64,000 bases of DNA from Octopus sinensis (taxonomy: Eukaryota): contig NC_043026.1 of assembly GCF_006345805.1 (NCBI RefSeq), forward strand, positions 4,402,001-4,466,000, in the 5' to 3' direction. Positions within the stretch are counted from its first letter, which is position 1. The number at the start of each line of letters is the position of its first letter. The notes under the pieces were generated by a model. That model did not search any database and was not told the origin of the DNA. It was given only the letters and a program-made list of their open reading frames with translations. Below, one piece after another: positions 1-58,696 of the stretch. Made by a program: the position numbers and the translations under genes.

Positions 1-1270
1 ATCCGGCAGAGTTTCTACAGCTGGATGCCCTTCCTAATGCCAACCATTGAGAGTGTAGTGGGTGCTTTTACGTGTCACCGCCATGGGGCCAGTCACGCGA
101 TACTGGTAACGACCTTGCTCAAATCTTTTACACATGCCACCAGCACAGGTGCCAGGAAGGCAATGCTGGTAACTATCAAGCTCGAATAGCGACTTTTATG
201 TGCCACTGGCACGGAAGCCGGTTAGCCACTCTGTCAACGATCACACTCGTATGGTGCTCTTTGCTCCCCGCTAGCACAGATGCCAGTCATCGGATTTGAT
301 TTTGATTTCACTTGCATCAACAGGTCTTCGCAAGCAGAGTTTTAGTGTCCAAAGAAGGAAAAGGGACGCATAAGTGGGCTGGTTACACCCCTGGCATAGA
401 CCACGAGGTTATGGTTTCATGTGGCTTGCTGAGTCTTCTCACGCACGGCATATTTCCAAAAGTGTCGGTCACTAGTCATTTCCTTGGAGAGGCCTAAAGT
501 TTGAAGGTCATGCTTCACCACTTCATCCCAGGTTTTCCTGGGTCTACCTCTTCCACGGGTTCCCTCAACCGCTAGGGTGTGGCACTTTTTCACACAGCTA
601 TCCTCATCCATTCTTGTGACATGACCAAACCAGTGCAGTCGTCTTTTGCACACCCTATCTGCTGCTTCTTAGGTCCAATATTTCTCTCAAGGTACTTACA
701 CTCTGTCGAGTATGAACACTGACATTACATATCCATCAGATCATACTGGTTTCATTCCTTGCGAGCTTACGCATGTCCTCAGCAGTCACAGCCCATGTTT
801 CACTGCCATGTAGCATGGCTGTTCGTGCAAATGCATCATACAGTCTACCTTTTACTCTGAGCGAGAGGCCCTTTGTCACCAGCAAAGGTTAGAGCTCTCT
901 GAATTTTGCCCAAGCTATTCTTATTCTAGCAGCTACACTTTCAGCGCACCTCCCTGCTACTGACTTGGTCACCTAGGTAATGGAAGCTATCAACTACTTC
1001 TAGTTTTTCTCCCCGGAATGTGGCGGAAATTGTTCTCTGAACATTTTCAGTGTTTATTGCACCCGAGCATCTGCCACATACAAAAGCTATCTTCCCAGTT
1101 AGCCTTCCTTTGATATTGCTGCATCTCTTATGTGTCCATAGCTTACACTGGGTACATCTTAGAGTTTATACCTAAACCTCTACTACAGATCGAGCAGGGC
1201 CATCTACCTGAAGGGATTTGTGGTTTGCTTGCCTCCCACTTATTAGGAATTTGGTTTTAGCTAGGTTGAC
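1..1270 (-). mobile_element. RTE-clade LINE, 3' part: post-RT Cys-rich region, C-terminus and 3'UTR with internal tandem repeats; degenerate
   Basis: Minus-strand peptides GLRVNLAKTK, RWPCSIC, AARIRIAWAKFREL and ORF 417-653 (RRLHWFGHVTRM...RGRPRKTW...DR..W) are typical of RTE ORF C-termini. The sequence continues into the GGCATTAGGAAGGGCATCCAGC 3'UTR. Confidence 0.85.
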
Positions 1271-1429
1271 TCTAAGGCCCTTTGATAATATATATATATA
1301 TTATATATATTTGTTGAAATGGAAAGATGAATTTTCTTGTTACAGATTATTCAAAGTTTACCGATACCTGGGTAGCAAAAATCACAGCAGAAAAAAACAC
1401 GGTTGGAGATAAGACCATTTGGTGTTGCA

Positions 1430-1465
<36 letters not shown>

Positions 1466-1485
1466 TATATATATATATATATATA

Positions 1486-1690
1486 TTGTTATATTTCGGA
1501 ATGGTCATTCTGCCAGTTTAGCCAATAAAACACACGCACTATATATTTGGTGTTATTTTGCTTCATGTTATTTATTTTTACATTAATCTTAATCTTATTT
1601 CGGGCAGAGTTCTTTCGTCACACTCCTGTGACCGCATCAGTGGTCCTTTATTGGCTAAACTGGCAAAATGACCATTTCGAAATATAACAA
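1486..1690. mobile_element. MITE with ~45-bp terminal inverted repeats and TA flanks
   Basis: TTGTTATATTTCGGAATGGTCATTCTGCCAGTTTAGCCAATAAA at the left end is the reverse complement (2 mismatches) of 1646-1690; TA on both sides, within a (TA)n tract. Confidence 0.75.
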
Positions 1691-1741
1691 TATCTGTTTC
1701 AACACACGACTTCACATAAAAAATCTTGCACAACAAATATT

Positions 1742-1775
<34 letters not shown>

Positions 1776-2199
1776 TATTTAGCAGAAGTAACAAAGTGAC
1801 CCAAAATCCGAAAGTTTTGTTTATTAGCATTTATCAAACTGGTTCTTTGGAGGTATATTCCCAGACCTCAAAAACCAGTTTGATGAGTGTCAACTCTCAG
1901 ACCTTGAGTCCCTACTGTCACGTCCCTATCACCCCTACCTCTATCTTTCATCTCTCAATCACTCTCTCTTCTTCTTTTTACTCTATCTTACTGCTGTGAC
2001 AAAGATTGGCAGTAAATCTCTTCTCTTCACCATTCTTCCAATGAAACTAGGGATGTTACTGGACCTACCTGAGTCTCTCCCCAACACTCAGCCACTCCTT
2101 TTCATATATTTATTACCCTAGATCTCTCACACATCCCAGGGTATATGTCACACCCAGAGATTGAGGGGAACCTTTAGTTTTGTCAAGGACATGGCAATT

Positions 2200-2370
2200 G
2201 TCTCTAGTGACGGTGCCATAAGATGCACCCAGTGCACATTGTGCAGTGGTTGGTGTCAGGAAGTGCATCCAGCTGTGGAAAGAAAACCAGAAAATGTAAC
2301 TTCAGGCAAGATATTCTCTGAACCATCCAACCCATTCCAGCATGGAAAGTGGGGGTAAAATGATGATCAT
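2200..2370 (+). mobile_element. Degenerate copy of the RTE 3'UTR-type repeat
   Basis: GTGGTTGGTGTCAGGAAGTGCATCCAGCTGTGGAAA ... CCAGCATGGAAAGTGG then ATGATGAT resembles the younger copies at 13.0 and 16.6 kb. Confidence 0.6.
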
Positions 2371-3831
2371 CATACATACATACAGACGTATGGATGTATA
2401 AATATACATATGTGCATCTTTCTTTGTCTATATATTATACACATTCATTCATATATATGTGTATGTGTATATAGATACAAACACAATTAGATTGAAGTCT
2501 AATATAATTATTATGAAGGGTTTTGTAGGTTTTTCTTCCCCAAAGTAAACCAAGTAGAATGGCACAAGTGAAACATAAACATTCATTCCAATTTAATTTT
2601 ACAATAGAAATATTGGCAATTATCTGGTTTTCTCTTTATAAACTTTGTTGTCAACAACAACAGCAATAACAACAACATATCCTTATCCAGCTTTTCTCCA
2701 AAATATGTTGTTTAGTCCATGTATATTCAAAGAGCTGACATCCTGAAGAAGGATGATGATGATGGGTCACCAGAATGTCATTAAACACCCCCACCAATAT
2801 TTCCTAATCCACCTCATTAAACCCCCAATACTTCATAATAAACTACACCAAGTTATAACTCCTCACCTAACACAAAACAAAACACACTTCACCTGCCAAA
2901 CCCTTTTTCATACAAACACATCTTTCTCATTGCTACCCAAACATTGTCCCTTATATTAAAGATAATTAAGATGAACCTACCTTTCATTAATTGGGCTTAT
3001 TCATTAACCAATCTTTATGATCTCAATCAGCAACAAATAATAATGATCCTCTCAACATGCTGTCTATCAGTGTGATTATATGAAAGCCCATCTTTGGATA
3101 AGCTTTCTGAGTTAATCAATGTTGTGTGTGATAATTGTGTGGATTATATTGAAATGTCAAGAGATTTACAGCATTTTTCAGATTAAGAACAGTTTCATCT
3201 CCAGCTTTATTCGTATTTGCTAATCCAGGTAAATATGATGGAAACCAAGCCAACCATGACTGTCCCATCATTTTAAGTACATATAATCATTAGTAATACT
3301 TATATTCCATCTAACTAGCAAAATGTTCTGTCTGTCTTGTATCTGACAAATGTCTATGAAACATAATAAAGTCTATGTTTTGCTAATTGTTCCATGTTAA
3401 CGAAGTTTGAACATGATTGCTGTGTGTTGGGACATAATATAGCATGTACACCAATTAAAATTAATTTTCTCTACAGCTTAGAGTGTCTCGTTATAGAGTG
3501 CTTTTAGAGCAGGGGAATCTCTTTGACTAATTATCGTTAAATAAATCTAAACCACACATGACTATTTCTTTGTGATGTTGAGAGCAAATATCATTTCCAG
3601 TGAAAATAATTATTTCTAATATTTAGACTCCATGTAATTAATGAAACTTAATACATCTTAGAATAGATTGTAATAAGTTGTTTAAATATTAATTAGACAA
3701 GATTAATTCACTGACAGAAATACATAAATGTTTTGTTTGTGTTTTTCAATGATGAGCAAACATCATCTTCCTGAAACTTTAATATTTTCACAAAGCTAAA
3801 TGTTTTCCTTATATTTCTTTACAGATTCACT

Positions 3832-6800
3832 ATGGAAGACCAGACTGAAAATACTAGTGTTATTTCAGAGAGAGAATCAGCAGTGAAGGCCATATCTGGA
3901 GACAAAGAAAGCACAAAAGAAATAGTTGCTAAAATACAGAGGATTTGTCTTCAATATGATCGCTGCATGATGTTTATGGAGCATATAGTTAAGGAGAGCA
4001 AACATTATGAAAGTCTGGGATTAAGTGCCAATCGTATTTTAGAAAAGGTCAAAGAGAGACTTGGAATTTTGCTGAAAAATACTAAAGAACAGAATATTTC
4101 TATTGAGCAGGACCTCGAATGGTTTCAACAAAGACTCTTTGACATTTATGTCACCAGCAATCTATACAGATGGAAGACCATTCAGACACCAAAAATAACC
4201 AAAAATAAATTTCGGCCTCTTCAGACAGTTGTGACTAGAGAAGCAAATATCAAGGAATCTGGAGAAGAATTTGAAGAAATCCCAATAATATCCAATATTG
4301 TCATCGTAGAGGAGGGAGTGATGACATATTCCCACCATTGTAAGATAATAAGTTTAGTAACAAGAGACAGTGACAGAATTGATGTCTATTGTCCATCTTC
4401 TGTGACCAGTTTCACAAGAATCAATGAAGACATGGTTCTGGCAACCCTCCCCTTCCAAGAAACGATTCTTATTATCAGCCCCAAAACCTTTAAAATCAAA
4501 AGGATACAGTTGGGTTTACATATGGTGAGTTACTTGGAAGATTCTACACTTATAGGTGTAGAAATGTTTGGTAAGACTGTTTACCAATTTGATTGGGAGG
4601 ATAATACCATTAACTATCAATTTATTACCAAAGAAACCCCTACAGATATTGCTGTAGGGGTCCAGAATATACTTGTAATTACATTCGCCAGCATCAACAG
4701 AGTAATCTGTTACAAACTGGATGGCCAACAGTTATGGGAGGTAGAGACCCATTCTCTGCACCTCCCAAGTAAAATCTCTCTCTACCAAAATTATTTCTAT
4801 GTCCTCCAGGGACAAATAATTTATAGAATTTCAGCTAAAGGTGGTGTAACAAGGAGGGACATTGGCAGGAAATGCCGCTCTATTTCTGTTGGTAAAGATA
4901 CCATTTTGGTAACAGATTATTGCGGCAAACCACATGGTATTCAAATGAATAAAGACTTTTGGCCCAAATTGTCATACAACCACCAGCTACATACCCCCAG
5001 TTTAAAAGACTATATTGATATTGAGGACTGCTACAACATTACAAATATTCTACCTATGTCTACATCTTCTATATTAATAATTTACAAAAACAAGAAAGCT
5101 AAATTATTCACTGATAACGGGGAAATAATTAACCAAAATAATTCAGTTTTCCTTCAGCTTCCTTCTTTCTGTTGTAGAATAAACGCAAACAGATTCCTGG
5201 TATTTTATTGTGAAAAGAAAGGGTTTCAGTATATCACATGTCCTGAACTAAGAAAAGGCCCTTTAATAAAGGTGCAAACTGGTTACATGAAAATATGTCA
5301 TATTGTATCAAATAAGTGTCTGGCTGTGACCACCACTGAAAACAAAAGCGAGGTCCATATCCTCTTGATCCACAAATATAAAGTTGACATTGCAGAAAGA
5401 ATTTCTCTTGGACATCATAATGTCAGCATTGCTGCAACTCCAATTAATTTTGTAGTCGTAGATGGAAGCGAAAATAAAATGGTATTTTATTCCACATGTG
5501 GAGAAAAACTTTTTCAAAAATACCTTCCATTCTATGGCTACCCTCATCACATCTACTCTGATAATGTTTATATCTATGTCCTCTCCAGGAGACACTCTAT
5601 TCTCAGATGTTACGATCTATATGGACAAATGAAATGGCAGTGGGAACTGCCTTTCCCTGTTCACCCTGACATTGCTGTTTTCCAAGGAACACTTTATGTC
5701 CCGGACACTCAACTCAACAGGGTTCTTCTTTACAAGTATCAAGACCGGTCGTCTGGCTGTCGTTTACCCACGAAAAATCCTTATATCAGAAATCTAAATC
5801 TACGACTCAAAGAAAAGGAGAATGACCAAAAACTTGTCATTGGTGAAATATGTAATCTGGCCAATGGACAGTTGGTGGTGTCTGACATCAATCATGATTG
5901 CTTGTTGTACATTTCTCAGGGAGGAGACATTGTGTCCAGATTATCTCTGCCGTCTACAGCCACAGATATATGTCGATGGGATTTTAATCATATAGGGGTC
6001 ACATTACCCCTACAGAAACAATTAAGGGTCATCGGAAACCTATCAAAGAGAGTGAGAAGTGTATCATTAGGGCAGCCTTATGTACGGATGTGTAAGATGG
6101 GTGAATGTGAAATTGTTTGTTATTGTGATAAACCATCACATTTAGATATTTTAGCCATCAATAATTATAATCAAGTTCAAGTAATTAAGACAATTAATAT
6201 CCCTGTGTTTGTGAAATCATTATCAATAGACAAGAAAACAGAAAAGCTATTAATTGTTACTAGGGGAAAAGCTTTTCAGTACAACACTAGAATAGGTGGT
6301 GGTGGTCATGGCAGCACACATCGTCAGAGTGGTGGAAGTGATGGTAGTATTAGTAGTGGTGATGGTAGTATTAGTAGTAGTGATGGTATGGTTTCCAGTG
6401 ATTCAGAGTCCGAAACAGAAGCTTTCTTCAAGGACATTAGTGGTGGTGGTCATGGCGGTCGTCAGATGGTCCCCAGTGTTTTAATGTCCCAAGTGAAACG
6501 TCCCCTCAGTCTCCAAGGTGGATCTATTGACCAAACGTCTGTTTATCTGATAGACAGAAGCCGTATGTTTGCCATAAACGATCAGAATTTGTTGGTTAAT
6601 GATCTCGTTACTAATAATCAACTTAATTATTATATCGACCTGGTGGATGTATTTTCCAGACACATTTCTCTCAGTGAAATGTTGTCTTCCACTTTATATC
6701 TACAGGACCTGACAGTTTCTGATAAAGCCAGACATATTCCTCTCCCTAAACATTTGGGAGACAAAGAACCAGCGGAGATTAATCGTTTGGTTCTTACTGA

Positions 6801-9267
6801 AAATAATCTGATTGCAGGATATGACAGGAAGAACGGAAACATTAAGATATTCACATTGGATGGTCAGCTTTTGGATTCAATCAAAGTGAATGTTTATGAT
6901 TATATTAAAATGTGTCGATGGCAGTCAAACACACTGGTCATTAAGAATAGGGATCGTTTAAAGAAACACCAACTGTTGACATTAAAAGTGGAATTTCCAC
7001 TGTTGTTGGTAATTTACAAAACGAGAAATAATTATGAATGTGTGGCTTCTTTATCAAACAATCAACTGGTTTTGAGTGAACGGAAAGATGGAAGACATTT
7101 GCATTTTGTTGATATTGATGAAATACATTCGAATGTGAAGGAAATAAATAAAATAGACATACCTGAACCATTAATAAGGAGAGACGAAGATGGAAATTAT
7201 TCTGATAGAATCCAGGATATTAAAGTTACTGCTGAAGATGTCATCATTGTCTTCAACTGGAGATTCATCATTTTCTTCAACAGTGGTGGTCAATATTTAC
7301 ATTCAGTCAGACACTACATGGAGTATTATCTTGGTGATGATGACAGGATGACAATTGATGACAGTTTTTTGTACATTCATGGTGGGTGGGAGAAATGTTT
7401 AAGTTCATCTGAATATGGAAACATTTTGTGTTTGACCCAGAATGGGGAATACAAGAGAATATTTTTAAATGAAAGAATTTATAAAGATAAAGTAGAATTC
7501 TCCAGTATAGACTGTAAAGGACCAAGGCTTGTTGGAAGCCGTAGGAGTGAATGGAGGAGAGAGAATGAATTGTATGTTGAAGGGTTGTTTATGGTGAATC
7601 GAGACAGCTTCCCGGTTGCTCGTTTACAAACAGACGAATGTCCTGTTCAAGTAAAAGATTTTGATGTCTCTGAGGAAGGAAAGACAGTTGTGTGTGAAAA
7701 AGCCAATAATGGAAATGTTAAAATATTCGATGAAGACGGCCAGTTGCTATGTCACAGAAATGTTGCAAGTTTAGTTGGTGGTGCGTGTTTTACACAAGAA
7801 TCACACATAATGGCCACGGTTCCTAAAAGGAAAGAAATATTTCAACTGAATGGAGAAGATTTGCAGACATCTCAAGTTTGGTCGAGTCTCATCCCTTATG
7901 GTGTATTATGGAGAAAAGTGGCGGGTATTTACTGGTGTGTACATATTGAATTGATTGAATGTCATTGCATAAAGATTGATGGGGACCAAGCGAACATTCT
8001 GGAATCTGTGTCATCATTAAATCTTGATTCTGGTCTTCGTTTCCCTTCCATTACATCTGAAACGAACAAGGAAATATTCAGTAATGAATTAATTAATAAA
8101 TTGGAATACAGAGGAGGAGATGGAGAAGGAGGAGGAAGAAGAAGAGGTAAATCAGGTGAAATAATTGGTAAAGGTAGATTAAAGGTGAGATGTGGTAATT
8201 ACATAGCGGAGATTAATAATTCAGGAATTGATGAAATATCAGTGAAGAGACTTCCATATAGGACAGCAATGGTCCCTTTTTCCATTCCTGCATTCAAGGA
8301 ACCTGTTGATTATGATTGTGGGGACATTAGGGACCGGAACAGTAAACTAATTAAGTTAGATGAGAATGTGAGTGTGTTGATGTTTCGAGAAAGTGTCACA
8401 TTAATCAGAACAACAACAACAACAGTGGACATACTTCAACATGAACAACAACAACGACCACCACTGGACATATGTCGGTGGACAGAGGAATGTTTCATTG
8501 TCACCTTTGGGAGAGAAATGAGGGTCTTCAACAGGGATCTCCGTTGTTTAAAAACCATCAGAACTGAGAAATACTACAACAGGATTTATATATACAACGA
8601 GAATCAACTCGTGTGTGGTGGTCATTATATTAGAGACATAACTCAAGAAGAGAGACACAAGAAATACCGAAGAATATGGAAGAACAACAAGTATTACTAT
8701 CTTTGCAAAGACCACTACATCTTTGACCGTTATTATGTGGATGTGGTTGATATCAAAGATGGGAAATGTAAAGATGAAGTGTGTCGTGGGAAGATGAGGA
8801 GATTGGGAAGGTGGGAGGGATATGAAGTGGTGGAAGATGTGGGAGTCACATCTTTTGGTGATGTTGTTGTTTTAAGGAGGGAGATGAAGGGGTCTGGAAT
8901 TTGGGAAGATTTTTGTTTTGTGGAATGGTTCAGGGAAAAGTCTTTGGTGAGGAGGATAAGAATAGAAGAAACGTTTTATGTTCCGGAATATTATATTGCA
9001 AGACCTCGTCTGACCATAATTGGTGAATGTGTTTATATAACAGATAAAAAAAACAATATTTACGAAATACCTCGACATATTGAAGAGGAAACATCTGAAG
9101 ATGATGAAATCCTGGGATTTGGATATAATCCAAAATATTTACTCCTCAGAGAGGATGATAATGAAGTCGTTGAAGTTCTTGGTTTGGATGTTTCAGACAA
9201 TTCTTTGATGGTTTTTGGAATTATTCCTGGACGTCAATCTTTTGCTTTCTTTTATTTTGACAAATAA
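3832..9267 (+). CDS. 1811-aa single-exon protein: N-terminal helical/coiled-coil segment plus about six tandem beta-propeller (NHL-like) modules; resembles the C-terminal part of TRIM-NHL/B-box proteins but multiplied
   Basis: Uninterrupted 5.4-kb ORF in AT-rich DNA. Polypyrimidine tract plus AG acceptor at 3823-3824 lies 7 nt before the ATG, with an open frame upstream, so an N-terminal exon is possible. Recurrent blades such as DICRW...V, and ...IKIFTLDGQLL / ...VKIFDEDGQLL. The fold is inferred from sequence pattern only. Confidence 0.85.
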   Translation: MEDQTENTSVISERESAVKAISGDKESTKEIVAKIQRICLQYDRCMMFMEHIVKESKHYESLGLSANRILEKVKERLGILLKNTKEQNISIEQDLEWFQQRLFDIYVTSNLYRWKTIQTPKITKNKFRPLQTVVTREANIKESGEEFEEIPIISNIVIVEEGVMTYSHHCKIISLVTRDSDRIDVYCPSSVTSFTRINEDMVLATLPFQETILIISPKTFKIKRIQLGLHMVSYLEDSTLIGVEMFGKTVYQFDWEDNTINYQFITKETPTDIAVGVQNILVITFASINRVICYKLDGQQLWEVETHSLHLPSKISLYQNYFYVLQGQIIYRISAKGGVTRRDIGRKCRSISVGKDTILVTDYCGKPHGIQMNKDFWPKLSYNHQLHTPSLKDYIDIEDCYNITNILPMSTSSILIIYKNKKAKLFTDNGEIINQNNSVFLQLPSFCCRINANRFLVFYCEKKGFQYITCPELRKGPLIKVQTGYMKICHIVSNKCLAVTTTENKSEVHILLIHKYKVDIAERISLGHHNVSIAATPINFVVVDGSENKMVFYSTCGEKLFQKYLPFYGYPHHIYSDNVYIYVLSRRHSILRCYDLYGQMKWQWELPFPVHPDIAVFQGTLYVPDTQLNRVLLYKYQDRSSGCRLPTKNPYIRNLNLRLKEKENDQKLVIGEICNLANGQLVVSDINHDCLLYISQGGDIVSRLSLPSTATDICRWDFNHIGVTLPLQKQLRVIGNLSKRVRSVSLGQPYVRMCKMGECEIVCYCDKPSHLDILAINNYNQVQVIKTINIPVFVKSLSIDKKTEKLLIVTRGKAFQYNTRIGGGGHGSTHRQSGGSDGSISSGDGSISSSDGMVSSDSESETEAFFKDISGGGHGGRQMVPSVLMSQVKRPLSLQGGSIDQTSVYLIDRSRMFAINDQNLLVNDLVTNNQLNYYIDLVDVFSRHISLSEMLSSTLYLQDLTVSDKARHIPLPKHLGDKEPAEINRLVLTENNLIAGYDRKNGNIKIFTLDGQLLDSIKVNVYDYIKMCRWQSNTLVIKNRDRLKKHQLLTLKVEFPLLLVIYKTRNNYECVASLSNNQLVLSERKDGRHLHFVDIDEIHSNVKEINKIDIPEPLIRRDEDGNYSDRIQDIKVTAEDVIIVFNWRFIIFFNSGGQYLHSVRHYMEYYLGDDDRMTIDDSFLYIHGGWEKCLSSSEYGNILCLTQNGEYKRIFLNERIYKDKVEFSSIDCKGPRLVGSRRSEWRRENELYVEGLFMVNRDSFPVARLQTDECPVQVKDFDVSEEGKTVVCEKANNGNVKIFDEDGQLLCHRNVASLVGGACFTQESHIMATVPKRKEIFQLNGEDLQTSQVWSSLIPYGVLWRKVAGIYWCVHIELIECHCIKIDGDQANILESVSSLNLDSGLRFPSITSETNKEIFSNELINKLEYRGGDGEGGGRRRGKSGEIIGKGRLKVRCGNYIAEINNSGIDEISVKRLPYRTAMVPFSIPAFKEPVDYDCGDIRDRNSKLIKLDENVSVLMFRESVTLIRTTTTTVDILQHEQQQRPPLDICRWTEECFIVTFGREMRVFNRDLRCLKTIRTEKYYNRIYIYNENQLVCGGHYIRDITQEERHKKYRRIWKNNKYYYLCKDHYIFDRYYVDVVDIKDGKCKDEVCRGKMRRLGRWEGYEVVEDVGVTSFGDVVVLRREMKGSGIWEDFCFVEWFREKSLVRRIRIEETFYVPEYYIARPRLTIIGECVYITDKKNNIYEIPRHIEEETSEDDEILGFGYNPKYLLLREDDNEVVEVLGLDVSDNSLMVFGIIPGRQSFAFFYFDK

Positions 9268-9289
9268 ATATTTCCAGAAATATTAAACT

Positions 9290-9965
9290 TCAATCTTCTT
9301 CTTCTTATTGTTGTTGTTGTTGTAAATGGCTTCGCCCCGGAATTGAATCTGCATCGCATACATTGCATTCTACACACTAACAATTATTGTTGTAACATTC
9401 CTCAACACACTCTCTTTGTGTGTGTGTGTGTATATTTATATACAGTATATATACATGTGTTTATATATATATATACACACACATATTTAGGCATGTGTGT
9501 ATAGAAATAAGGCTATAAGTATGTATGTTTGTGTGTGTGTATATACGCATGTATATATATGTATATGTATATATACGCATGCATGTATGTATAGGAATGT
9601 CTTCTCCGAAACCAGAGACTTTCATAATCATTGATTCTCCATTAAAAGGCAGACGACCAACAACAACAACAATAACAACAGCAGACGACAACCGCCACCA
9701 CCATCATCATCGTCATCATCATCATCGTCATCATCATCATCGTGATCATCCTCATCATCATCATCATCCTCATCACCATCATCATCATCATCCTCATTAT
9801 CATCGTCATCAGCGTTGTGTGTGCGTGTGTGCAGTCTGCATCTGAAAATTTTTAACGTTTAATAAGAATAGATTGTTGTTGTTGTTGTTGCAGTGACATT
9901 CCAACTGCACACACGCAAAAACATTGCCTTTCGTCCTCGTAGGGTCGTTGTTGTTGTTGTTGCTG
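9290..9965. repeat. Microsatellite cluster: (GTT)n, (TG)n, (TA)n, (CAA)n, (CAT)n at ~9702-9810
   Basis: Directly visible simple repeats. The overlapping His-rich ORF 9525-9845 is a by-product. Confidence 0.95.
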
Positions 9966-10773
9966 TTGGGGGTTCATAAAAAAAGAGAAGGACACTTTAA
10001 GAAGCATTCAGTAAAAGCTTTCCCATAGCTGGTCATTTTTCATGCTAGAAATAGAAACCACTTTATTTTTCATATAAATTTTGAAGGACAGTTAAGAACC
10101 TTTTAAAAATGAAATTGGCCTGTATATGGTCTCATTTCATGCTAGAAAGAGCCACAAAAACCTTCACACTTTTGTTTCATCACAAATAAAAATCGAAGGA
10201 CAATTTACAAAGAATCCATGTCAAATATTGTCCTATAGATGGCCTAACATCATGCTAGAAATAACAGCCAAATACTCTGAAATTTGTATCGTTTGTCAAC
10301 AAAAAGTGAAGGACACTTTAAGAAGCAACTCTGAAAATATTGTTCTGTGGCGGTTTAAGTGTAAAATATTATAAAAGTATGCATCTATGAGTTTTATGTG
10401 TTTAAAAAACATAGCAAAGACATGTGTGTATATGTAGGTATATATAAATATACGTGTGTATAAATGTTCCTTGATGATGTATATGCTTCTTCCCTAATAA
10501 CTTGCAGAGAAATGGATATTTTTCATGGAATTTCCTACAAATATGCTTCAGATGGTGTAGATTCCGATTCTATGGGGATTATTGGGAAAACTTTTTTTCT
10601 TTCATAACAAAAGCAAATCTTGTGAATTTTGTAAAACTGCTTTTCCCACCAAGGGACAAACGGTTTTCACAATGAATTCCGATTTAATCGGAATCTAAAC
10701 AATCTGAAGAATATTTGTAGAAAATTTCATTAAAAAACATTTAATTTTGCGAAAGTTGTGAGGAAGCAAATTC

Positions 10774-12176
10774 GGCATAACTACAGATATATACCCCACT
10801 GACTTTGTTTCCTCATAACTTGCAGAAAAATGCATATTTTTTAAAGGAAACTTTCAACAAATAATCGCTTAGATCCTGTAGATTGAGATTTTGTAAGGAT
10901 TTGTTGGAAAAACATTTTCTGAAGGGTTGCGGAAAGGAGTTTCACGAAATTCACACAACCAGACATTTTCCCTCCTCATAAATTTCAGGAAAATGGGTAT
11001 TTTTGAATGAAATTTGGTAGAAATAACTTTCAAACGATGTAGATTACGATTAAAAAGAAATTTGTTGGCAAAATGTTTTGTAAGGGGTCAAGGGAAAAAG
11101 TGTGTGATTTAAGGGAGATTTGGCTGTTGTTTCTAGCACACCACCCTCCTAGTCTTCTTTTTTTCTCATTCAATGTTTTTGATGTTTTTCAATATTTTCC
11201 CTCAGAAACACATTTATGTTATAAAAAAATAAAAAGAATATTTTTAAAATCTCTGATTATTTTAGCCCCACTTCCTGGCCCCCGATTCTTCTCTTTATAT
11301 AATTGTAAAATATTGGAGAGCCTGAGAAGATTTTGCTGGGAATTATCCACAGGGATTTAAATAAGAGCTTTGTAAAAGAGGATTTCTTTTGAGAGCATCC
11401 TTTTCTCTTAGAAAATGCTTTCTTTTCTTACACACACGGCCTCGCTTGGTTGCGATTCGAACAAAAATCGAAATTACCATTTTGTCTTTTCTCTTAGCTT
11501 ATTATATCGCAGCAATGGACCAGGCGTGTGTTACTTTGGCATCATCATTCCATAAAATGTGTTTCTGGGGAGAGAAAATATTGAAAAGCATCAATAGATG
11601 TGAGATTGAGAAAGAAACGAGGAGGGAGGTGTTGGGATGTGCTAGAAATAACAGTCACACCTCCCTCAAATCAAACATTTTCCTCTCAAATTATTAACAA
11701 TTTTTGCTAAATTTTGGTAAGGACACCCACAAGATTTTCACCAAGAAAAAGAAACCCGAGTTTTTCTTTTTTCTTAGTGAAAATCGCAGGGTTTTCTTAC
11801 CAAAGTTTACCTTTTTAAGAGAAAATGTTTCTCTCACGTTTTTAAGGACCCCTAAAAACATTTTGCTTTGGATGTATTTTGAGGAATGGCTAAGTTTCGT
11901 TTTCTAGCATTTTACATGGTTCAACCTAAACAAGTGAATGTGAGAAAAACAAAATAGGGATTTTGGAAGAAGTTTCTATAAAACTAGTTTTAAACATCGT
12001 ATGGATTCAATGGGGGTCCATCTGAGGAAAATAGTAATTAAAGGGGTCCGTAGATAAAGAAATAGTCGGGAACCCATGATTTGAAAGGTATTTCTATAAA
12101 ATTTCATTAAAAACACCGATTTTCACGAAAGTTATGAGGAAACAAAGTCGATGGGGTGTATATCTGTAGTTATGCC
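10774..12176. mobile_element. Putative non-autonomous DNA element bounded by ~50-bp inverted repeats
   Basis: GGCATAACTACAGATATATACCCCACTGACTTTGTTTCCTCATAACTT at 10774 is the reverse complement of 12129-12176. No TSD seen. Confidence 0.55.
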
Positions 12177-20314: not shown

Positions 20315-21430
20315 CTATATGAACATGTATACGAGTACACCACAGTGATAAGGCCTCTCGCCGGCATGAATACGTTTGTGACATTTTAAAACACTTTGGT
20401 CTGAGAATGATGTACCACAGATATCACAGTGATAGGGCTTCTCTGCTGTATGAACACGTATGTGCCTAGTGAAGCTACCTTTTTGAGAGAATGATTTACC
20501 ACAAGTGTCACAGTGAAATGGCTTCTCTCCTGTGTGAACACGTTGGTGTATAGTCAAGTTATTACTTTGAGAGAAATATTTACCACAGATGTCACAGTGA
20601 AATGGCTTCTCTCCTGTATGAACACGTATGTGAGACTCCAAGGCATTTTGCTGAGAGAATGATGTACTGCAGACATTACAGTGAAACGGCTTTTCTCCAG
20701 TATGAACACACTTATGTGAAGTCAAGCTACCTTTCTGAGGGAATGATATACCACAAATGTCACAGTCATATGGCTTATCTCCTATATGAATACGTTGGTG
20801 TTTGGTCAAGCTGTCTTTTCCCCGGAATGATTTATTAGAGATGTCACAGTGAAATGGCTTCTCTCCTGTAAGAAAACTCTTGTGAGAATCTAAAGAACTC
20901 CGCTGAGAGAATGATGTACCACAGACATCACAGTGAAATGGCTTCTCTCCTGTATGAATATGCTTGTGTATAGATAAACTACCATTTTGAGAGAATGATT
21001 TAGAACAGATGTCACAGTGATATGGCTTCTCTCCAGTATGAATGCGTTTGTGTTGAGTCAGTGAAACATTTATAGAGAATGATTTACCACAAGTGTCACA
21101 GTGAAATGGCTTCTCCCCTCTATGAACACGTATATGAGAATTTAAAGCATTGTGGTCAGAGAATGACCTACTACAGACATTACAGTGAAATGGTTTCTGT
21201 CCTGTATGAATACGTTTGTGTCTAGTCAAGTTACAACTCTGAGAGAATGATTTATCACAAATGTCACAGTGATAGGGCTTCTCTCCTCTATGAATATGTT
21301 TGTGCGTATTCAAGCTGCTCTTTTGAGAGAAAGACTTTTTACAGACATCACACTCATGTGACAATTTTTGTCTCTCTTTTTCTCTATTTTCTGGAAAAAT
21401 CAGTTTCTTTATTTTCTCACTCTTTTCCAT
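20315..21430 (-). CDS. C2H2 zinc-finger protein ZNF-A, copy 1 (371 aa, 12 fingers, fingers 6 and 7 broken)
   Basis: [12 protein letters not shown]... with TGEKP linkers. Finger 6 reads SHKSFLTG (His lost) and finger 7 reads CDISNK (Cys lost). Splice acceptor at 21789-21791. Confidence 0.9.
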   Translation of the reverse strand: MEKSEKIKKLIFPENREKERQKLSHECDVCKKSFSQKSSLNTHKHIHRGEKPYHCDICDKSFSQSCNLTRHKRIHTGQKPFHCNVCSRSFSDHNALNSHIRVHRGEKPFHCDTCGKSFSINVSLTQHKRIHTGEKPYHCDICSKSFSQNGSLSIHKHIHTGEKPFHCDVCGTSFSQRSSLDSHKSFLTGEKPFHCDISNKSFRGKDSLTKHQRIHIGDKPYDCDICGISFPQKGSLTSHKCVHTGEKPFHCNVCSTSFSQQNALESHIRVHTGEKPFHCDICGKYFSQSNNLTIHQRVHTGEKPFHCDTCGKSFSQKGSFTRHIRVHTAEKPYHCDICGTSFSDQSVLKCHKRIHAGERPYHCGVLVYMFI

Positions 21431-22230: not shown

Positions 22231-22624
22231 TCTCTCTTTTAATTGTTTCAGTCATTTGACTGCGGCCATGCTGGAGCACCGCCTTTAGTCGAGCAAATCG
22301 ACCCCGGGACTTATTCTTTGTAAGCCAAGTACTTATTCTGTCGGTCTCTTTTGCCGAACCGCTAAGGGACGGGGACGTAAACACACCAGCATCAGTTGTC
22401 AAGCGATATTGGAGGGGCAAACACAGACACACAAACACACACATATATATATACATATATACGACAGGCTTCTTTCAGTTTCCGTCTACCAAATCCACTC
22501 ACAAGGCATTGGTCGGCCCGGGGCTATAGCAGAAGACACTTGCCCAAGATGCCACGCAGTGGGACTGAACCCGGAACCATGTGGTTGGTTAGCAAGCTAC
22601 TTACCACACAGCCACACCTGCGCC
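22231..22624 (-). mobile_element. Octopus-type tRNA-derived SINE, full length
   Basis: Reverse complement of the 39607-40001 and 27114-27556 type. Partial copies flank it (22010-22200, 22680-22790). Confidence 0.85.
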
Positions 22625-22854
22625 TATGTATAACACACATAAATAATCATTAATATATACTATATATATATATATTGGGCTTCTTTCAGTTTCTATCTAC
22701 CAAATCCAATCACAAGGATTTGGTCGGCTAATGTCTTGTATAAAATACTTGCCTAAGTAGGTTCGCAGGGGACTGAACCTGGAACCATATATATATATGC
22801 TTACACGTTAATATATATGTATGTGTATATATATACATGTGTGTGTATGTGAAG

Positions 22855-26770: not shown

Positions 26771-27113
26771 CTATACCCTATAGGCTCCTATACATACATA
26801 GGAAGACCCTATACCCTATAGGCTCTTATACATACATCACAATTTTTTTCGAAATTTCTAGTTTTATTGTAAGGTATGTGTTAGTAAGTATAGATCTCAT
26901 CTTGCATAAGAAAATCTGATATAATTGTAATCTACACCATCTGAAGGGCATTTCTAGAAAATTTCCTGAAGAATTACCTATTTTTCGGAATGTTATGATG
27001 AAAGAAATGCAACAAGTGTTCTTTCCCGAAACACATACGCCACCCTCAGAAAATACATTTTCTAAACAAATTCTGAGATAATCAGAATCTACATTATCTG
27101 AATAGTATTTATA

Positions 27114-27290
27114 GGCGCAGGAGTGGCGGTGGGTGTGGTAAGTAGCTTGCTAACCAACCACATGGTTCCGGGTTCAGTCCCACTGCGTGGCATCTTGGGC
27201 AAGTGTCTTCTGCTATAGCCCCGGGCCGACCAAAGCCTTGTGAGTGGATTTGGTAGACGGAAACTGAAAGAAGCCGTCGTCGTATATATG

Positions 27291-27325
<35 letters not shown>

Positions 27326-27556
27326 ATATATCTGTATGTGTGTATGTTTTGTGTCTGTGTTTGTCTGTTAGCATTGCTTGACAACCGATGCTGGTGTGTT
27401 TACGTCCCCGTAACTTAGCGGTTCGGCAAAAGAGACCGATAGAATAAGTACTGGGCTTACAAAGAATAAGTCCCGGGGTCGATTTGCTCGACTAAAGGCG
27501 GTGCTCCAGCATGGCCGCAGTCAAATGACTGAAACAAGTAAAAGAGTAAAAAGAGA
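27114..27556 (+). mobile_element. Octopus-type tRNA-derived SINE, full length
   Basis: Same head, (TA)n middle and AAAAGAG tail as the other copies. Confidence 0.9.
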
Positions 27557-30789: not shown

Positions 30790-32332
<1,543 letters not shown>

Positions 32333-39250: not shown

Positions 39251-39606
39251 ACTGAGGGACTGAAGACGTAATCTGAAATAAATTTCTTAATTTCGTTAAT
39301 GTTTTTACTCAGTAGAGTTAAGTGGGTCGTCATAAACTGGTGTGATAAATAGTGGGTCACGACTCTGAAAGGTTTGGGGACCACTGTTCTAGTGTTAACC
39401 GTTTAGCATTTAAACCAGCCACAACTGGCCCAAATATGCTACCTCTTTTATTTTCAAACTAACCAGAGTTGGCCTCTTACACCTACCCTACAATGTTATT
39501 CTAAAAATACTCAATCACATCGTCATCACTTGAAAGCTGTGAGTTAATGCAGGACAAATTGAAAATAACGTGAATAAACATCACATTGGACAGAATGAAC
39601 TACATG

Positions 39607-40001
39607 GGCGCAGGAGTGGCTGTGTGGTAAGTAGCTTGCTCACCAACCACATGGTTCCGGGTTCAGTCCCACTGCGTGGAATCTTGGGCAAGTGTCTTCT
39701 ACTATAGCCACAGGCCAACCAATGCCTTGTGAGTGGATCTGGTAGATGGAAACTGAAAGAAGCCTGTCGTATATATGTATGTGTGTGTATATGTTTGTGT
39801 GTCTGTGTTTGTCCCCTAGCATTGCTTGACAACCGATGCTAGTGTGTTTACGTGCCCGTCACTTAGTGGTTCGGCAAAAGAGACTGATAGAATAAGTACT
39901 GGGCTTACGAAGAATAAGTCCCGGGGTCGATATGCTCGACTAAAGGCAGTGCTCCAGCATGGCCGCAGTCAAATGACTGAAACAAGTAAAAGAGTAAAGA
40001 G
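39607..40001 (+). mobile_element. Octopus-type tRNA-derived SINE (no MITE insertion)
   Basis: Paralog of 18428-19548 at the same position in the duplicated block. Confidence 0.9.
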
Positions 40002-40844: not shown

Positions 40845-41960
40845 CTATATGAACATGTATACGAGTACACCACAGTGATAAGGCCTCTCGCCGGCATGAA
40901 TACGTTTGTGACATTTTAAAACACTTTGGTCTGAGAATGATGTACCACAGATATCACAGTGATAGGGCTTCTCTGCTGTATGAACACGTAAGTGCCTAGT
41001 GAAGCTACCTTTTTGAGAGAATGATTTACCACAAGTGTCACAGTGAAGTGGCTTCTCTCCTGTGTGAACACGTTGGTGTATAGTCAAGTTATTACTTTGA
41101 GAGAAATATTTACCACAGATGTCACAGTGAAATAGCTTCTCTCCTGTATGAACACGTATGTGAGACTCCAAGGCATTTTGCTGAGAGAATGATGTACTGC
41201 AGACATTACAGTGAAACGGCTTTTCTCCAGTATGAACACGTTTGTGTGAAGTCAAGCTACCTTTCTGAGGGAATGATATACCACAAATGTCACAGTCATA
41301 TGGCTTATCTCCTATATGAATACGTTGGTGTTTGGTCAAGCTGTCTTTTCCCCGGAATGATTTATCACAGATGTCACAGTGAAATGGCTTCTCTCCTGTA
41401 TGAAAACGCTTGTGAGAATCTAAAGAACTCCGCTGAGAGAATGATGTACCACAGACATCACAGTGAAATGGCTTCTCTCCTGTATGAATATGCTTGTGTA
41501 TAGATAAACTACCATTTTGAGAGATTGATTTAGAACAGATGTCACAGTGATATGGCTTCTCTCCAGTATGAATACGTTTGTGTTGAGTCAGTGAAACATT
41601 TATAGAGAATGATTTACCACAAGTGTCACAGTGAAATGGCTTCTCCCCTGTATGGACACGTATATGAGAATTTAAAGCATTGTGGTCAGAGAATGACCTA
41701 CTACAGACATTACAGTGAAATGGTTTCTCTCCTGTATGAATACGTTTGTGTCTAGTCAAGTTACAACTCTGAGAGAATGATTTATCACAAATGTCACAGT
41801 GATAGGGCTTCTCTCCTCTATGAATATGTTTGTGCGTATTCAAGCTGCTCTTTTGAGAGAAAGACTTTTTACATACATCACACTCATGTGACAATTTTTG
41901 TCTCCCTTTTCCTCTATTTTCTGGAAAAATCAGTTTCTTTTTTTTCTCACTCTTTTCCAT
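40845..41960 (-). CDS. C2H2 zinc-finger protein ZNF-A, copy 2 (371 aa, 12 intact fingers)
   Basis: All Cys/His ligands present; acceptor near 42320. Confidence 0.9.
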
Positions 41961-42547: not shown

Positions 42548-42774
42548 CTTTTCCTTGTGTCAGTTGTTTTGGCTGTGGCCATACTGGAGCATAACCTTAG
42601 AGAGTTTTAGTTGATCAAATCAACCCTAGGACTTCATTTTTGAGCCTAGTACTTATATTGGCCTCTTTTGTGAAACCACTAAATTATGGGGACATAAACA
42701 CACCAACACTGGTTATCAAGTGTTGGTGGGGCGTCAAACAGTCACAAAGACACACACACATATATAACTCTAAC

Positions 42775-43155
42775 TCTCTCTTTTAATTGTTTCAGTCATT
42801 TGACTGCGGCCATGCTGGAGCACCGCCTTTAGTCGAGCAAATCAACCCCGGGACTTATTCTTTGTAAGCCCAGTACTTATTCTATCGGTCTCTTTTGCCG
42901 AACCACTAAGTGATGGGGACGTAAACACACCAGCATCAGTTGTCAAGCGATATTGGAGGGGCAAACACAGACACACACATAAATATATATATATATATGC
43001 GACAGGCTTCTTTCAGTTTCCGTCTACCAAATCCACTCACAAGGCATTGGTTGGCCCGGGACTATAGCAGAAGACACTTGCCCAAGATGCCACACATGAA
43101 CCCGGAACCATGTGGTTGGTTAGCAAGCTACTTACCACACAGCCACACCTGCGCC
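42775..43155 (-). mobile_element. Octopus-type tRNA-derived SINE
   Basis: Paralog of 22231-22624. Confidence 0.85.
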
Positions 43156-44073
43156 TATGTATATACACATAAATACTCATTAATATACATATATATATAT
43201 TGGGCTTCTTTCAGTTTCCATCTACCAAATCCAATCACAAGGATTTGGTCGGCTAATGTCTGTTGTATAAAATACTTGCCTAAGTAGGTTCGCAGTGGGA
43301 CTGAACCTGGAAACATATATATATATGCTTACACGTTAATATATATGTGTGTGTATATATATACATGTGTGTGTATGTGAAGGTATTGGGGTTAGTGGTG
43401 TGAGCAATCAGCCCCTAATAAGGTCATAAATCCAATTCCCAGCAGCGTGCTGTGTTCTTGAGCAAGACATGTTGCTCCGGGTTCACTCAGCTGACAAAAC
43501 TGAATTGTACCAGTAATTTGAAGGGCCAGCCTTATCAAATGGTCACATGCTTAATATGTGAGAGCTCCGTTATGGGTGAGCGTGTCTGTGGGGTGCTCAG
43601 CCACTTAAATGTTAATTTCAAGAGTAGGCTGTTGTGTTGATTGGAATTAGAAAAGCCTGACAGGGAAAGAGGTGTCATTATACCATTGTAGGAAGGTAAA
43701 GGGGACTACCACAACTGCAACAATAAAAAGGGCTGCTTCTCTCCTCTCAGTTGCCACTAAGTCATCTGCTTGCTTCTCAGCAGTCAGGTTTCCCACCAAA
43801 GAGGCCAATACTGAAAACGTAAGGTCTTTAAAGTCTGAAGGAGAAAATACAAAAAAAAAGAAAGAAAGAAAGAAAGAAATTACTCATTTTGCCCCTCTAC
43901 TTATTTTTGTTCCCTTTCTCTATATCAAGAGATAAACATTCGATGCAGAAAGTGGTGTAGATGTTCTTCGGTTTTTATTTGGCTGTCTTCATATTTATTA
44001 TGGTTGAATGAGATATTCCCACAAAGATATTATATTTAAATTGACCTAATATGTTGGGACTGACATGTTCCCT

Positions 44074-51721: not shown

Positions 51722-58696
<6,975 letters not shown>

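Follow-up and report, generated by a model that had tools for sequence, protein, structure and literature searches.

The window analysed here, 64,000 nucleotides of Octopus sinensis DNA (NC_043026.1, positions 4,402,001 to 4,466,000), contains an uninterrupted open reading frame of 1811 codons, for which a preliminary description made from the letters alone had proposed an intronless protein built from six tandem beta-propeller modules. The locus therefore raises the question of whether the encoded chain consists of six related modules, to which fold they belong, and what a protein of this kind might do. The gene itself is defined by the following features.

3832..9267, plus strand: complete CDS in a single exon, with an ATG start, encoding 1811 aa without internal stop
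3805..3824, plus strand: polypyrimidine tract and CAG splice acceptor, TTTTCCTTATATTTCTTTACAG then ATTCACTATG
276..11598, no strand assigned: segmental-duplication unit bearing the gene, from blastn of the window against the loci L001, L003 and L004

A mass of 209 kDa and a pI of 7.2 were computed from the 1811-aa ORF, and neither a signal peptide nor a TM segment was predicted in the protein. The CDS of the paralogs P0003, P0022 and P0037 is likewise contained in one exon. The ATG of the window gene lies 7 nt past the CAG acceptor, whose sequence shows no difference in the paralogous loci L003 and L004 and is also conserved at locus L005 of O. bimaculoides. In the gene model of the sister gene P0002, an exon 11.5 kb upstream is spliced to the same acceptor, matching the upstream exon that had already been suspected. 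The acceptor at 3824 thus marks a 5′-UTR intron with its upstream exon beyond the window, and the term intronless holds for the CDS and not for the 5′ UTR. Note that all family members in the databases come from genome annotation, and none from transcriptome assemblies.

Six modules and their kinship with NHL propellers

The protein was divided into an N-terminal region and six modules (M1 to M6) as listed below, where strands and helices are AlphaFold predictions.

3832..4248, plus strand: N-terminal region (aa 1-139), a variable hydrophilic head, three predicted helices and a linker
4249..5013, plus strand: M1 (aa 140-394), putative NHL-type propeller with 23 predicted strands
5014..5796, plus strand: M2 (aa 395-655), putative NHL-type propeller with 22 predicted strands, pLDDT 60-80
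5797..6756, plus strand: M3 (aa 656-975), putative NHL-type propeller, pLDDT 70-80 for aa 669-819
6289-6510, plus strand: Gly/Ser-rich disordered insert of M3 (aa 820-893), of varying length among paralogs
6757..7617, plus strand: M4 (aa 976-1262), putative NHL-type propeller in which the NHL signature is best retained of all modules
7618..8316, plus strand: M5 (aa 1263-1495), propeller-like, pLDDT <50 and least confidently modelled
8317..9264, plus strand: M6 (aa 1496-1811), putative NHL-type propeller with long-strand insertions, pLDDT 70-87

The helical N-terminus described previously was recovered as about 110 aa of predicted helices before the modules (aa 26-62, 66-86 and 92-108), with low confidence (pLDDT <60), and the N-terminal region ends with a conserved KFRPL..VVTREA..EESGE linker. 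The modules are 233-320 aa long, with 20-25 short predicted strands each, at a mean pLDDT of 54-55. The six motifs that had been quoted as equivalent second blades start at aa 191, 445, 711, 1025, 1316 and 1545, corresponding to spacings of 254, 266, 314, 291 and 229 aa. In AlphaFold secondary structure, the motif follows exactly four strands in every module and forms the first two strands of the blade after blade 1, so that its equivalence was borne out. Furthermore, when the whole protein was compared with itself, the off-diagonal offsets (519, 313, 292, 521 and ~1100) agreed with the blade-2 motif spacings, placing the proposed period of ~230-315 aa in the same register as motif spacings of 229-314 aa. 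The motif of M5, GGxCF..IMxTVP, is conserved across all clades.

Self-BLASTP (word size 2, E≤10) detected no internal repeat, indicating that the six-fold repeat is invisible at the single-sequence level and becomes visible with family profiles only. Module profiles were cut from a 23-sequence family alignment and compared profile against profile. Matches were obtained between M1 and M2 (P=2.4e-6 over 232 columns), M2 and M3 (P=1.1e-6), M2 and M4 (P=1.7e-7), M3 and M4 (P=6.6e-6), M3 and M6 (P=9.8e-9), M4 and M5 (P=2.6e-7), and M4 and M6 (P=3.7e-8), with 160-258 aligned columns across the module-module matches. Each of the other five modules was connected with M4 at P≤7e-6, either by a direct match or through an intermediate module, and the lowest P among 36 forward-versus-reversed controls was 0.0056. 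Argonauta and the deepest Octopus paralog both conserve all six motifs, in the same register. These profile matches (P 1e-5 to 1e-8), with their reversed controls, support the claimed six-module repeat and the mutual homology of the modules; the same six-module layout in Argonauta supports an old internal multiplication, as earlier proposed.

Pfam assigned no domain to the window protein, the single sub-threshold match being insignificant; specifically, the NHL repeat (PF01436) gave no match even at E≤10, RING gave no match, and neither a B-box nor a filamin repeat was found. Only 2 Cys are present in the N-terminal 139 aa. The best family member for Pfam NHL was P0050, with 18.5 bits and E=0.002 against a gathering threshold of 20 bits, and a sub-threshold NHL match was found in 2 of 10 M4 segments. 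The NHL signature has thus eroded below the Pfam threshold in this family, hereafter hexa-NHL.

On the profile level, M4 matched the NHL domain of P0066, a cuttlefish RING-B-box-NHL protein (Acanthosepion pharaonis CAE1315789.1) whose own NHL passes Pfam at 29.1 bits. The hhalign comparison gave P=1.5e-10 and 97% probability over 236 columns and spanned the whole NHL domain, whereas the reversed control gave P=0.87; the blade-2 motif ICxW...VTLP is common to the hexa-NHL family and P0066. No PDB sequence match was obtained for the full-length window protein, and a multi-module profile gave insignificant PDB matches only, so that a single-module profile was needed. With the M4-only profile, the top 12 PDB matches were all NHL propellers, and the matches comprised Brat (E 9.3e-5), Thin (9.4e-5), TRIM71 (3.8e-3) and TRIM2/TRIM3 (~5e-3). 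These results support the view that the modules are propeller-sized and related to the propellers of TRIM-NHL and molluscan B-box-NHL proteins, a kinship that the preliminary description had named and that agrees with the molluscan NHL proteins matched outside the family. Of the domains named there for checking, both NHL and B-box were negative at the Pfam threshold, and the NHL homology held at the profile level.

The N-terminal helices were also considered as a remnant of the TRIM coiled coil or B-box; this found no support, as a profile comparison with aa 1-400 of P0066 gave P=0.14, and aa 26-108 (pLDDT <60) have no detectable similarity to the P0066 coiled coil.

The AlphaFold models of the chain have a mean pLDDT of 54-55 and a pTM of 0.32-0.46, with M5 and the inter-module arrangement essentially unmodelled. 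After the helices, the predicted secondary structure is a near-unbroken run of 5-7-residue strands. When both protein halves were submitted to Foldseek, multi-propeller proteins were the sole matches (E ~1e-16, TM-scores 0.15-0.23, identity 8-12%). The models are therefore all-beta and propeller-like at this low confidence, in line with the repeated propellers originally proposed, and we infer from homology and strand counts that the modules may close into six discrete six-bladed propellers.

Among solved structures, M4 is most closely related to the NHL domains of Brat and TRIM71, both of which bind RNA. This raises the idea of a multivalent RNA-binding post-transcriptional regulator, in which every propeller would bind an RNA motif in the manner of Brat or LIN-41/TRIM71, so that the protein would cluster or scaffold mRNAs, e.g., in neuronal or germline granules. 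Consistent with this, the protein has the Gly/Ser-rich insert (aa 820-893) and an RGG-like stretch (~aa 1420-1450) within a disordered M5 loop (~aa 1395-1449), and a basic pI (9.0) was computed for M2 and the initial part of M3. However, the protein-binding NHL domains of TRIM2, TRIM3 and Thin score nearly equally, and the overall pI of M1, M4, M5 and M6 is acidic (5.5-6.3); we regard such a regulator as unlikely.

Octopod family, expansion and selection

An exhaustive homolog search of 1.84 billion representatives found the six-module architecture in Octopus species and Argonauta only. Outside the family, the sole matches in this set were molluscan NHL-bearing and RING/B-box proteins, and no well-annotated ortholog was found outside octopods. 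The preliminary description had called the architecture unusual unless orthologs were widespread among metazoans, and it proved to be confined to Octopus and Argonauta. The window protein aligns end to end with the Argonauta protein at 38% identity and with the deep paralog P0050 at 29%.

In the tree, the window gene is nested in an O. vulgaris clade. Two deep clades contain single-copy genes that are 1:1:1 orthologs; sequences of O. vulgaris and O. bimaculoides are 92-94% identical in the deep clades and 64-70% identical in the expanded clade. The flanks of the duplication unit share 90-97% identity with paralogous loci of the 29.19-Mb chromosome of O. vulgaris; the duplicated units are at least 11 kb long, and the expansion lies mainly on one O. 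vulgaris chromosome. A frame-broken copy (pseudogene) is present nearby in O. vulgaris, and gene conversion appears to have acted within the expanding lineage. As far as sequence comparison shows, the family comprises two slow single-copy lineages and one lineage expanding by segmental duplication. Nucleotide alignments of the window gene to its paralogs are interrupted at 6312-6440, within the M3 insert, and a 48-aa indel is present. At least two types of N-terminus occur among paralogs, and dS is 0.73 in the N-terminal region versus ~0.06 across the remaining gene, indicating a mosaic history of this region.

The window gene is physically interleaved with a C2H2 zinc-finger gene cluster, a co-location that may be coincidental. 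In addition, family members are joined to neighbours in some gene models, namely ZNF and DUF4371 (P0004 and P0010) or MIB2-like ankyrin and RING (P0063 and P0111). The ZNF, hAT-like DUF4371 and MIB2 fusions were rejected as functional evidence because they are probable annotation chimeras with adjoining genes. In the papers searched, neither the LOC identifiers nor a family of octopus NHL proteins is mentioned, and a paper on cephalopod C2H2 zinc fingers contains nothing on the window gene (PMC12513265).

A multi-copy, single-exon ORF whose duplicated unit includes its flanks might belong to a large transposable or other selfish element, and the models joining family members to hAT-like DUF4371 would fit such an origin. 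On the other hand, no LTRs or TIRs were found around the duplication unit, and Pfam detected no transposase, RT, integrase or other TE domain; the copies are clustered like tandem or segmental duplicates, the two deep clades have their single-copy orthologs, and the spliced 5′ UTR is conserved. We consider a selfish element extremely improbable, and a transposon origin was rejected since terminal repeats and TE domains are absent.

Selection was then evaluated within the gene. Between the window gene and P0002, 12.4 stops were expected under neutrality and 0 were seen (P=4e-6), and the 12-14 indels are all in frame, indicating that selection keeps the ORF open. Overall dN/dS is ~0.5, and it is 0.82-0.87 among the youngest copies. 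Values for M1-M3 are 0.25-0.5, M1 being the most constrained (0.25-0.48), while M4 reached 1.4-2.3 among the three youngest copies and M6 1.4-2.9 among the youngest copies. The heterogeneity between modules is significant (Fisher p 6e-7 to 3e-3), as is purifying selection on M1-M3 even among the youngest copies (p 5.6e-5 to 0.005); ω>1 in M4 and M6 is significant in 1 of 3 non-independent pairs. These estimates show M1-M3 as constrained and M4 and M6 as apparently evolving at or above the neutral rate.

The identity of the window gene to its closest paralogs is 94-96% in the CDS and 95-97% in the flanks. With the dN/dS of the youngest copies, this flank-like divergence is also compatible with much relaxed constraint. 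The window copy might then be a redundant young duplicate drifting to a pseudogene, like the frame-broken copy in O. vulgaris, with the old single-copy clades holding the real function. Nevertheless, the absence of the ~12 expected stops, the in-frame indels, and the significant purifying selection on M1-M3 argue against this, and we judge it quite improbable.

NHL-like regions of some TRIMs, e.g., TRIM56, bind viral RNA. By analogy with TRIM expansions, hexa-NHL proteins could be diversifying intracellular receptors for immunity or genome defence, though without an E3 ligase of their own: M4 and M6 would recognise fast-evolving viral or transposon RNA or protein, and the N-terminal helices would serve for effector recruitment or oligomerisation. 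The lineage-specific tandem expansion, birth-and-death turnover as seen in the pseudogene copy, gene conversion, elevated M4/M6 dN/dS (1.4-2.9) beside constrained M1-M3, descent from TRIM-NHL-like proteins, and the position inside a C2H2 zinc-finger cluster all fit this receptor. However, ω>1 reached significance in one pair only and could reflect relaxed constraint, conservation of the two deep single-copy clades at 92-94% suggests a housekeeping core function, and the ZNF co-location may be chance. We consider a receptor of this kind somewhat unlikely. The evolutionary pattern is compatible with an immune, anti-TE or RNA-binding role, as earlier suggested, but does not prove any of them.

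Proposed explanation and comparison with known systems

The explanation that we favour, and that is probably correct as a whole, is that hexa-NHL is a soluble, intracellular protein made of a helical N-terminus and six tandem NHL six-bladed propellers, acting as a non-catalytic multivalent binder or scaffold, and that the window carries a young and still intact copy from an octopod expansion. In this scenario, the RING/B-box part of a TRIM-NHL-like molluscan ancestor would have been lost or never carried over, and a single propeller would have been multiplied six-fold within one exon before the Octopus-Argonauta split. The resulting hexa-NHL gene would then have given rise to the octopod-specific family, in which one lineage presumably expanded through segmental duplications, with gene conversion and pseudogene formation alongside. 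An NHL propeller is a platform with one face for binding RNA or protein ligands, and six of them without a catalytic domain would make a non-enzymatic multivalent binder or scaffold. M1-M3 may serve a constant function, e.g., partner docking or assembly, while paralog-specific target or effector specificity may come from the fast M4 and M6 together with the variable N-terminus. The ORF, the homology of the modules, their NHL relationship, the taxonomic restriction, the mode of duplication and the selection pattern are shown by the analyses above; the closure into six propellers, the ligand binding and this division of labour among modules are inferred.

A bolder form, which we put forward as speculative and somewhat unlikely, is an octopod diversifying recognition system, with an M1-M3 core, M4/M6 specificity propellers and interchangeable heads tracking viral, transposon or RNA targets. 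If true, it would constitute a RING-less multivalent counterpart of TRIM restriction factors and a new class of invertebrate receptor for innate immunity or genome defence. The octopod restriction, the conserved single-copy lineages and the fast cluster make the family a candidate lineage-specific innovation beside the known protocadherin, C2H2-ZNF and GPCR expansions, and a tractable case of a new multi-domain architecture arising through internal duplication. Without Pfam detection, ~40-60 octopus genes sit in databases as 'uncharacterized'; the practical yield of this work is an annotation as six NHL-like modules, module boundaries for constructs, and the hypothesis of a constant core with variable modules.

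Among known systems, the modules have their homologue in the six-bladed NHL propeller of TRIM-NHL proteins (Brat, Mei-P26, Thin/TRIM32, LIN-41/TRIM71, TRIM2 and TRIM3), and like these, hexa-NHL is probably cytoplasmic and probably acts via ligands on its propeller faces. However, TRIM-NHL proteins carry one C-terminal propeller whereas hexa-NHL has six tandem modules, and since hexa-NHL lacks a RING, it would not itself act as an E3 ligase.

Cephalopod expansions of C2H2-ZNF, protocadherin and GPCR genes likewise consist of clustered tandem or segmental duplicates with single-exon coding bodies, but their folds and architectures are unrelated to hexa-NHL.

Multivalent docking by several propellers on one chain is found in DDB1/CPSF160/SF3B3, which have three 7-bladed propellers, and in LRP1/LRP2/LRP4-6, which have arrays of YWTD six-bladed propellers; EML5 and EML6 have three tandem atypical propeller pairs. 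For both halves of the window protein, Foldseek placed DDB1/CPSF160/SF3B3- and LRP-type proteins as the best matches, whereas neither the DDB1/CPSF160 nor the LRP families were matched in sequence or profile searches, and the likeness to them is one of architecture only. The blades of the DDB1/LRP type are WD40-like or YWTD while those of hexa-NHL are of the NHL type, and LRP propellers, unlike those of hexa-NHL, are extracellular with EGF modules between them. Furthermore, the DDB1-, LRP- and EML-type scaffolds are ancient proteins with conservation throughout eukaryotes or metazoans; hexa-NHL, by contrast, is octopod-specific. To our knowledge, NHL propellers occur one per protein in known cases, and a chain of six NHL modules without a catalytic partner domain would represent a new architecture for the NHL fold.

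Six-fold repeat and predicted fold

The window gene consists of 1811 ATG-initiated codons without a stop (3832..9267, plus strand) in a region with a G+C content of only ~37%. A Pfam search with this ORF gave nothing significant (one sub-threshold match, E=0.27), PDB sequences gave no significant match, and self-BLASTP detected no internal repeat, so that the single-sequence case for a repeat consisted of short motifs only. These are six peptides, at aa 191, 445, 711, 1025, 1316 and 1545 (successive distances 254, 266, 314, 291 and 229 aa), which a preliminary description had assigned to the second blade of six tandem propeller modules. An initial homolog search returned 41 proteins, exclusively from Octopus vulgaris, O. 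sinensis and O. bimaculoides, with 45-89% identity to the window protein and a functional name on none of the 41. Self-comparison of the whole protein with a 16-sequence family profile gave weak off-diagonal matches at offsets of 519, 313, 292, 521 and ~1100 aa, which are the spacings of the motifs. With a later alignment of 23 sequences, to which Argonauta and deep paralogs had been added, profile comparison linked all six modules (M1-M6), as had been proposed, and the lowest P in forward-versus-reversed controls (n=36) was 0.0056.

Links between modules in profile comparison
M1-M2, P 2.4e-6, 232 columns
M2-M3, P 1.1e-6
M2-M4, P 1.7e-7
M3-M4, P 6.6e-6
M3-M6, P 9.8e-9, 258 columns
M4-M5, P 2.6e-7
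M4-M6, P 3.7e-8

The window protein aligned end to end with Argonauta (38% identity) and with the deep paralog P0050 (29%), all six motifs being in register; the six-fold architecture is therefore older than the Octopus-Argonauta split, in agreement with the old multiplication suggested initially. Sequence comparison thus shows a six-fold repeat that is both real and old.

The fold was predicted by AlphaFold2 for aa 1-1000 and aa 640-1811, each with a 16-sequence alignment. Mean pLDDT was 53.8 and 55.4, respectively, representing low overall confidence, with values up to 70-87 within M2, M3, M4 and M6. These low-confidence models began with three helices (26-62, 66-86 and 92-108), after which each module had 20-25 short strands. 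In all six modules the motif came directly after four predicted strands and covered the next two, that is, strands A and B of blade 2, where the preliminary description had placed it. Foldseek searches of the PDB with both halves retrieved exclusively multi-propeller proteins (DDB1, LRP2/megalin, IFT-A, CPSF160, UTP21 and ciliary WD proteins; E ~1e-16, TM-scores 0.15-0.23), and these model-based matches appear to settle the fold class as propeller, but neither subtype nor arrangement.

Relation to NHL propellers

An exhaustive search of 1.84 billion representative proteins with a profile covering aa 125-1260 gave just 33 matches at E<=1e-3. The strong matches were Octopus family members or fragments and two proteins from Argonauta hians (1913 and 1925 aa). 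The outsiders were limited to P0066 (E=1.2e-8), a cuttlefish RING, B-box and NHL protein (Acanthosepion pharaonis, CAE1315789.1) whose NHL domain matched the M4 region; three NHL-containing metagenome/SRA proteins; one bivalve RING/B-box protein; and P0072, which has no Pfam match and aligned to M3 (P=7.7e-8) and M5 (P=6.9e-7). In profile comparison, the alignment of M4 with P0066 took in the whole NHL domain (aa 401-644; P=1.5e-10, probability 97%), versus P=0.87 for the reversed control. P0066 shares the blade-2 motif, which there reads HGICLWANYEVVVTLP. An M4-only profile, built without any outgroup sequence, retrieved NHL propellers as its 12 top PDB matches out of 12 (Brat 9.3e-5, Thin 9.4e-5, TRIM71 3.8e-3, TRIM2 and TRIM3 ~5e-3). 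Because M4 aligns to the P0066 NHL domain and retrieves NHL structures, the modules can be regarded as probable diverged NHL-type six-bladed propellers. The window protein gave no match to the Pfam NHL model, the best family member reaching 18.5 bits where the threshold is 20.

Two modules carry disordered inserts, and such loops can serve RNA binding or phase separation.

Disordered inserts
nt 6289-6510 (aa 820-893), Gly/Ser-rich insert within M3, length varying among paralogs
nt ~8014-8178 (aa ~1395-1449), loop within M5, including an RGG-like stretch around aa 1420-1450, RGGDGEGGGRRRGKSGEIIGKGR

Gene structure, genomic setting and selection

The coding sequence is a single exon in the window gene and in paralogs down to 47% identity, and to this extent the gene is intronless as first described. 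However, a strong splice acceptor, TTTTCCTTATATTTCTTTACAG, lies seven nucleotides 5' of the ATG. Two O. vulgaris paralogs have it unchanged, and it is also conserved in O. bimaculoides; the model of the sister gene P0002 connects it to an exon lying 11.5 kb further 5'. The equivalent 5' exon of the window gene would lie outside the window. The acceptor is absent from paralogs with the MEKINEENK... N-terminus, one of at least two unrelated N-terminal types in the family, the other being MEDQTENT.... The N-terminal type (3832-4248, aa 1-139) does not track the phylogeny of the remaining gene, and against the paralog P0003 dS was 0.73 in aa 1-139 and ~0.06 elsewhere, implying that 5' ends were exchanged between paralogs.

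The gene belongs to a duplicated unit that spans at least 11 kb (~276-11598). Three loci on the 29.19-Mb O. vulgaris chromosome match this unit at 90-97% identity, with flanks and CDS equally similar. The unit is not flanked by LTRs or TIRs and no TE domain was detected by Pfam, and a transposon origin was rejected. One of the three loci also holds a frame-broken copy.

Pseudogene copy
L004 3903-9010, minus strand, O. vulgaris OX597841.1 (~21.9 Mb), frame-broken

This copy has ~93% nucleotide identity to the window gene and is head-to-head with the intact paralog P0015, another paralog following ~5 kb downstream, which shows birth-and-death dynamics in the cluster. The ORFs neighbouring the window gene are C2H2 zinc-finger genes, and the hexa-NHL gene therefore lies within a C2H2-ZNF cluster. 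All four are nearly entirely zinc finger, with 10-16 fingers each, and two are exactly 371 aa.

C2H2 zinc-finger ORFs in the window
20315-21430, minus strand
30976-32332, minus strand
40845-41960, minus strand
44074-45561, minus strand

At 51757-58633 there is an 84-bp tandem array (82.4 copies, 94% matches), whose unit is exactly 28 codons, or one C2H2 zinc finger. One-base indels repeatedly break its frame (longest open stretch 349 aa), scattering 52 intact C2H2 motifs over three frames; it is either a satellite derived from zinc fingers or a poly-ZNF gene that is decaying or mis-assembled. A ~400 bp SINE- or MITE-like interspersed repeat occurs in both orientations (22233-22632, 27104-27548, 39601-39994 and 42760-43171) and has multiple copies, with 81-95% identity, in each of the paralog loci retrieved. 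Just 3' of the stop codon, (GT)n/(TA)n and (CAT)n microsatellites (9380-9850) create a spurious, His-rich reading frame of 106 aa (9525-9845), which is not a gene. Some O. vulgaris gene models join family members to C2H2 zinc fingers (P0004) or hAT-like DUF4371 (P0010), or an ankyrin and RING MIB2-like protein to the first ~110 aa of the family (P0063, P0111). These fusions are probably annotation chimeras with neighbouring genes; the RING fusion, if real, would be functionally suggestive.

A neighbour-joining tree placed the window gene inside an O. vulgaris-specific expansion, sister to P0002. The deep clades P0043 and P0050 are single-copy, with 92-94% identity between O. vulgaris and O. 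bimaculoides; O. bimaculoides relatives in the expanded clade share only 64-70% identity with the window protein. Nei-Gojobori dN/dS was ~0.5 in older pairs and 0.82-0.87 when the three youngest copies were compared with one another, and per module it was 0.25-0.48 for M1, 1.4-2.3 for M4 and 1.4-2.9 for M6. The contrast of M1-M3 versus M4 and M6 was significant (Fisher p 6e-7 to 3e-3), and ω>1 was significant in one pair only (p=0.0025). dS was strongly uneven along the gene, indicating recombination or gene conversion. In the CDS, 5.1% of the possible single-base changes create a stop, so that 12.4 stops are expected among the 241 differences from P0002; none was seen (P=4e-6), and all 12-14 indels were in frame. 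The window ORF is under selection. Its integrity and the purifying selection on M1-M3 speak against mere drift of this copy.

Possible function and comparison with known propeller proteins

Neither a signal peptide nor a TM segment was found in the window protein (top 19-residue hydropathy 1.52), and Pfam and profile comparison detected no RING, B-box or recognisable TRIM coiled coil. The protein is soluble, with six NHL-type modules and no catalytic domain. NHL domains of Brat and LIN-41/TRIM71 bind RNA and those of TRIM2, TRIM3 and TRIM32 bind proteins; all of them do so through one propeller face. The window protein may act as a multivalent, non-enzymatic binder or scaffold, in which M1-M3 would form a constant core and M4, M6 and the N-terminal head the variable, paralog-specific parts. 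These features are compatible with a putative immune/genome-defence or RNA-regulatory role. Database entries for the family are "uncharacterized" or "hypothetical", and the literature searched made no mention of hexa-NHL genes or of any octopus NHL family. The propeller fold is already known; what is new is a RING-less architecture of six propellers, together with its confinement to octopods.
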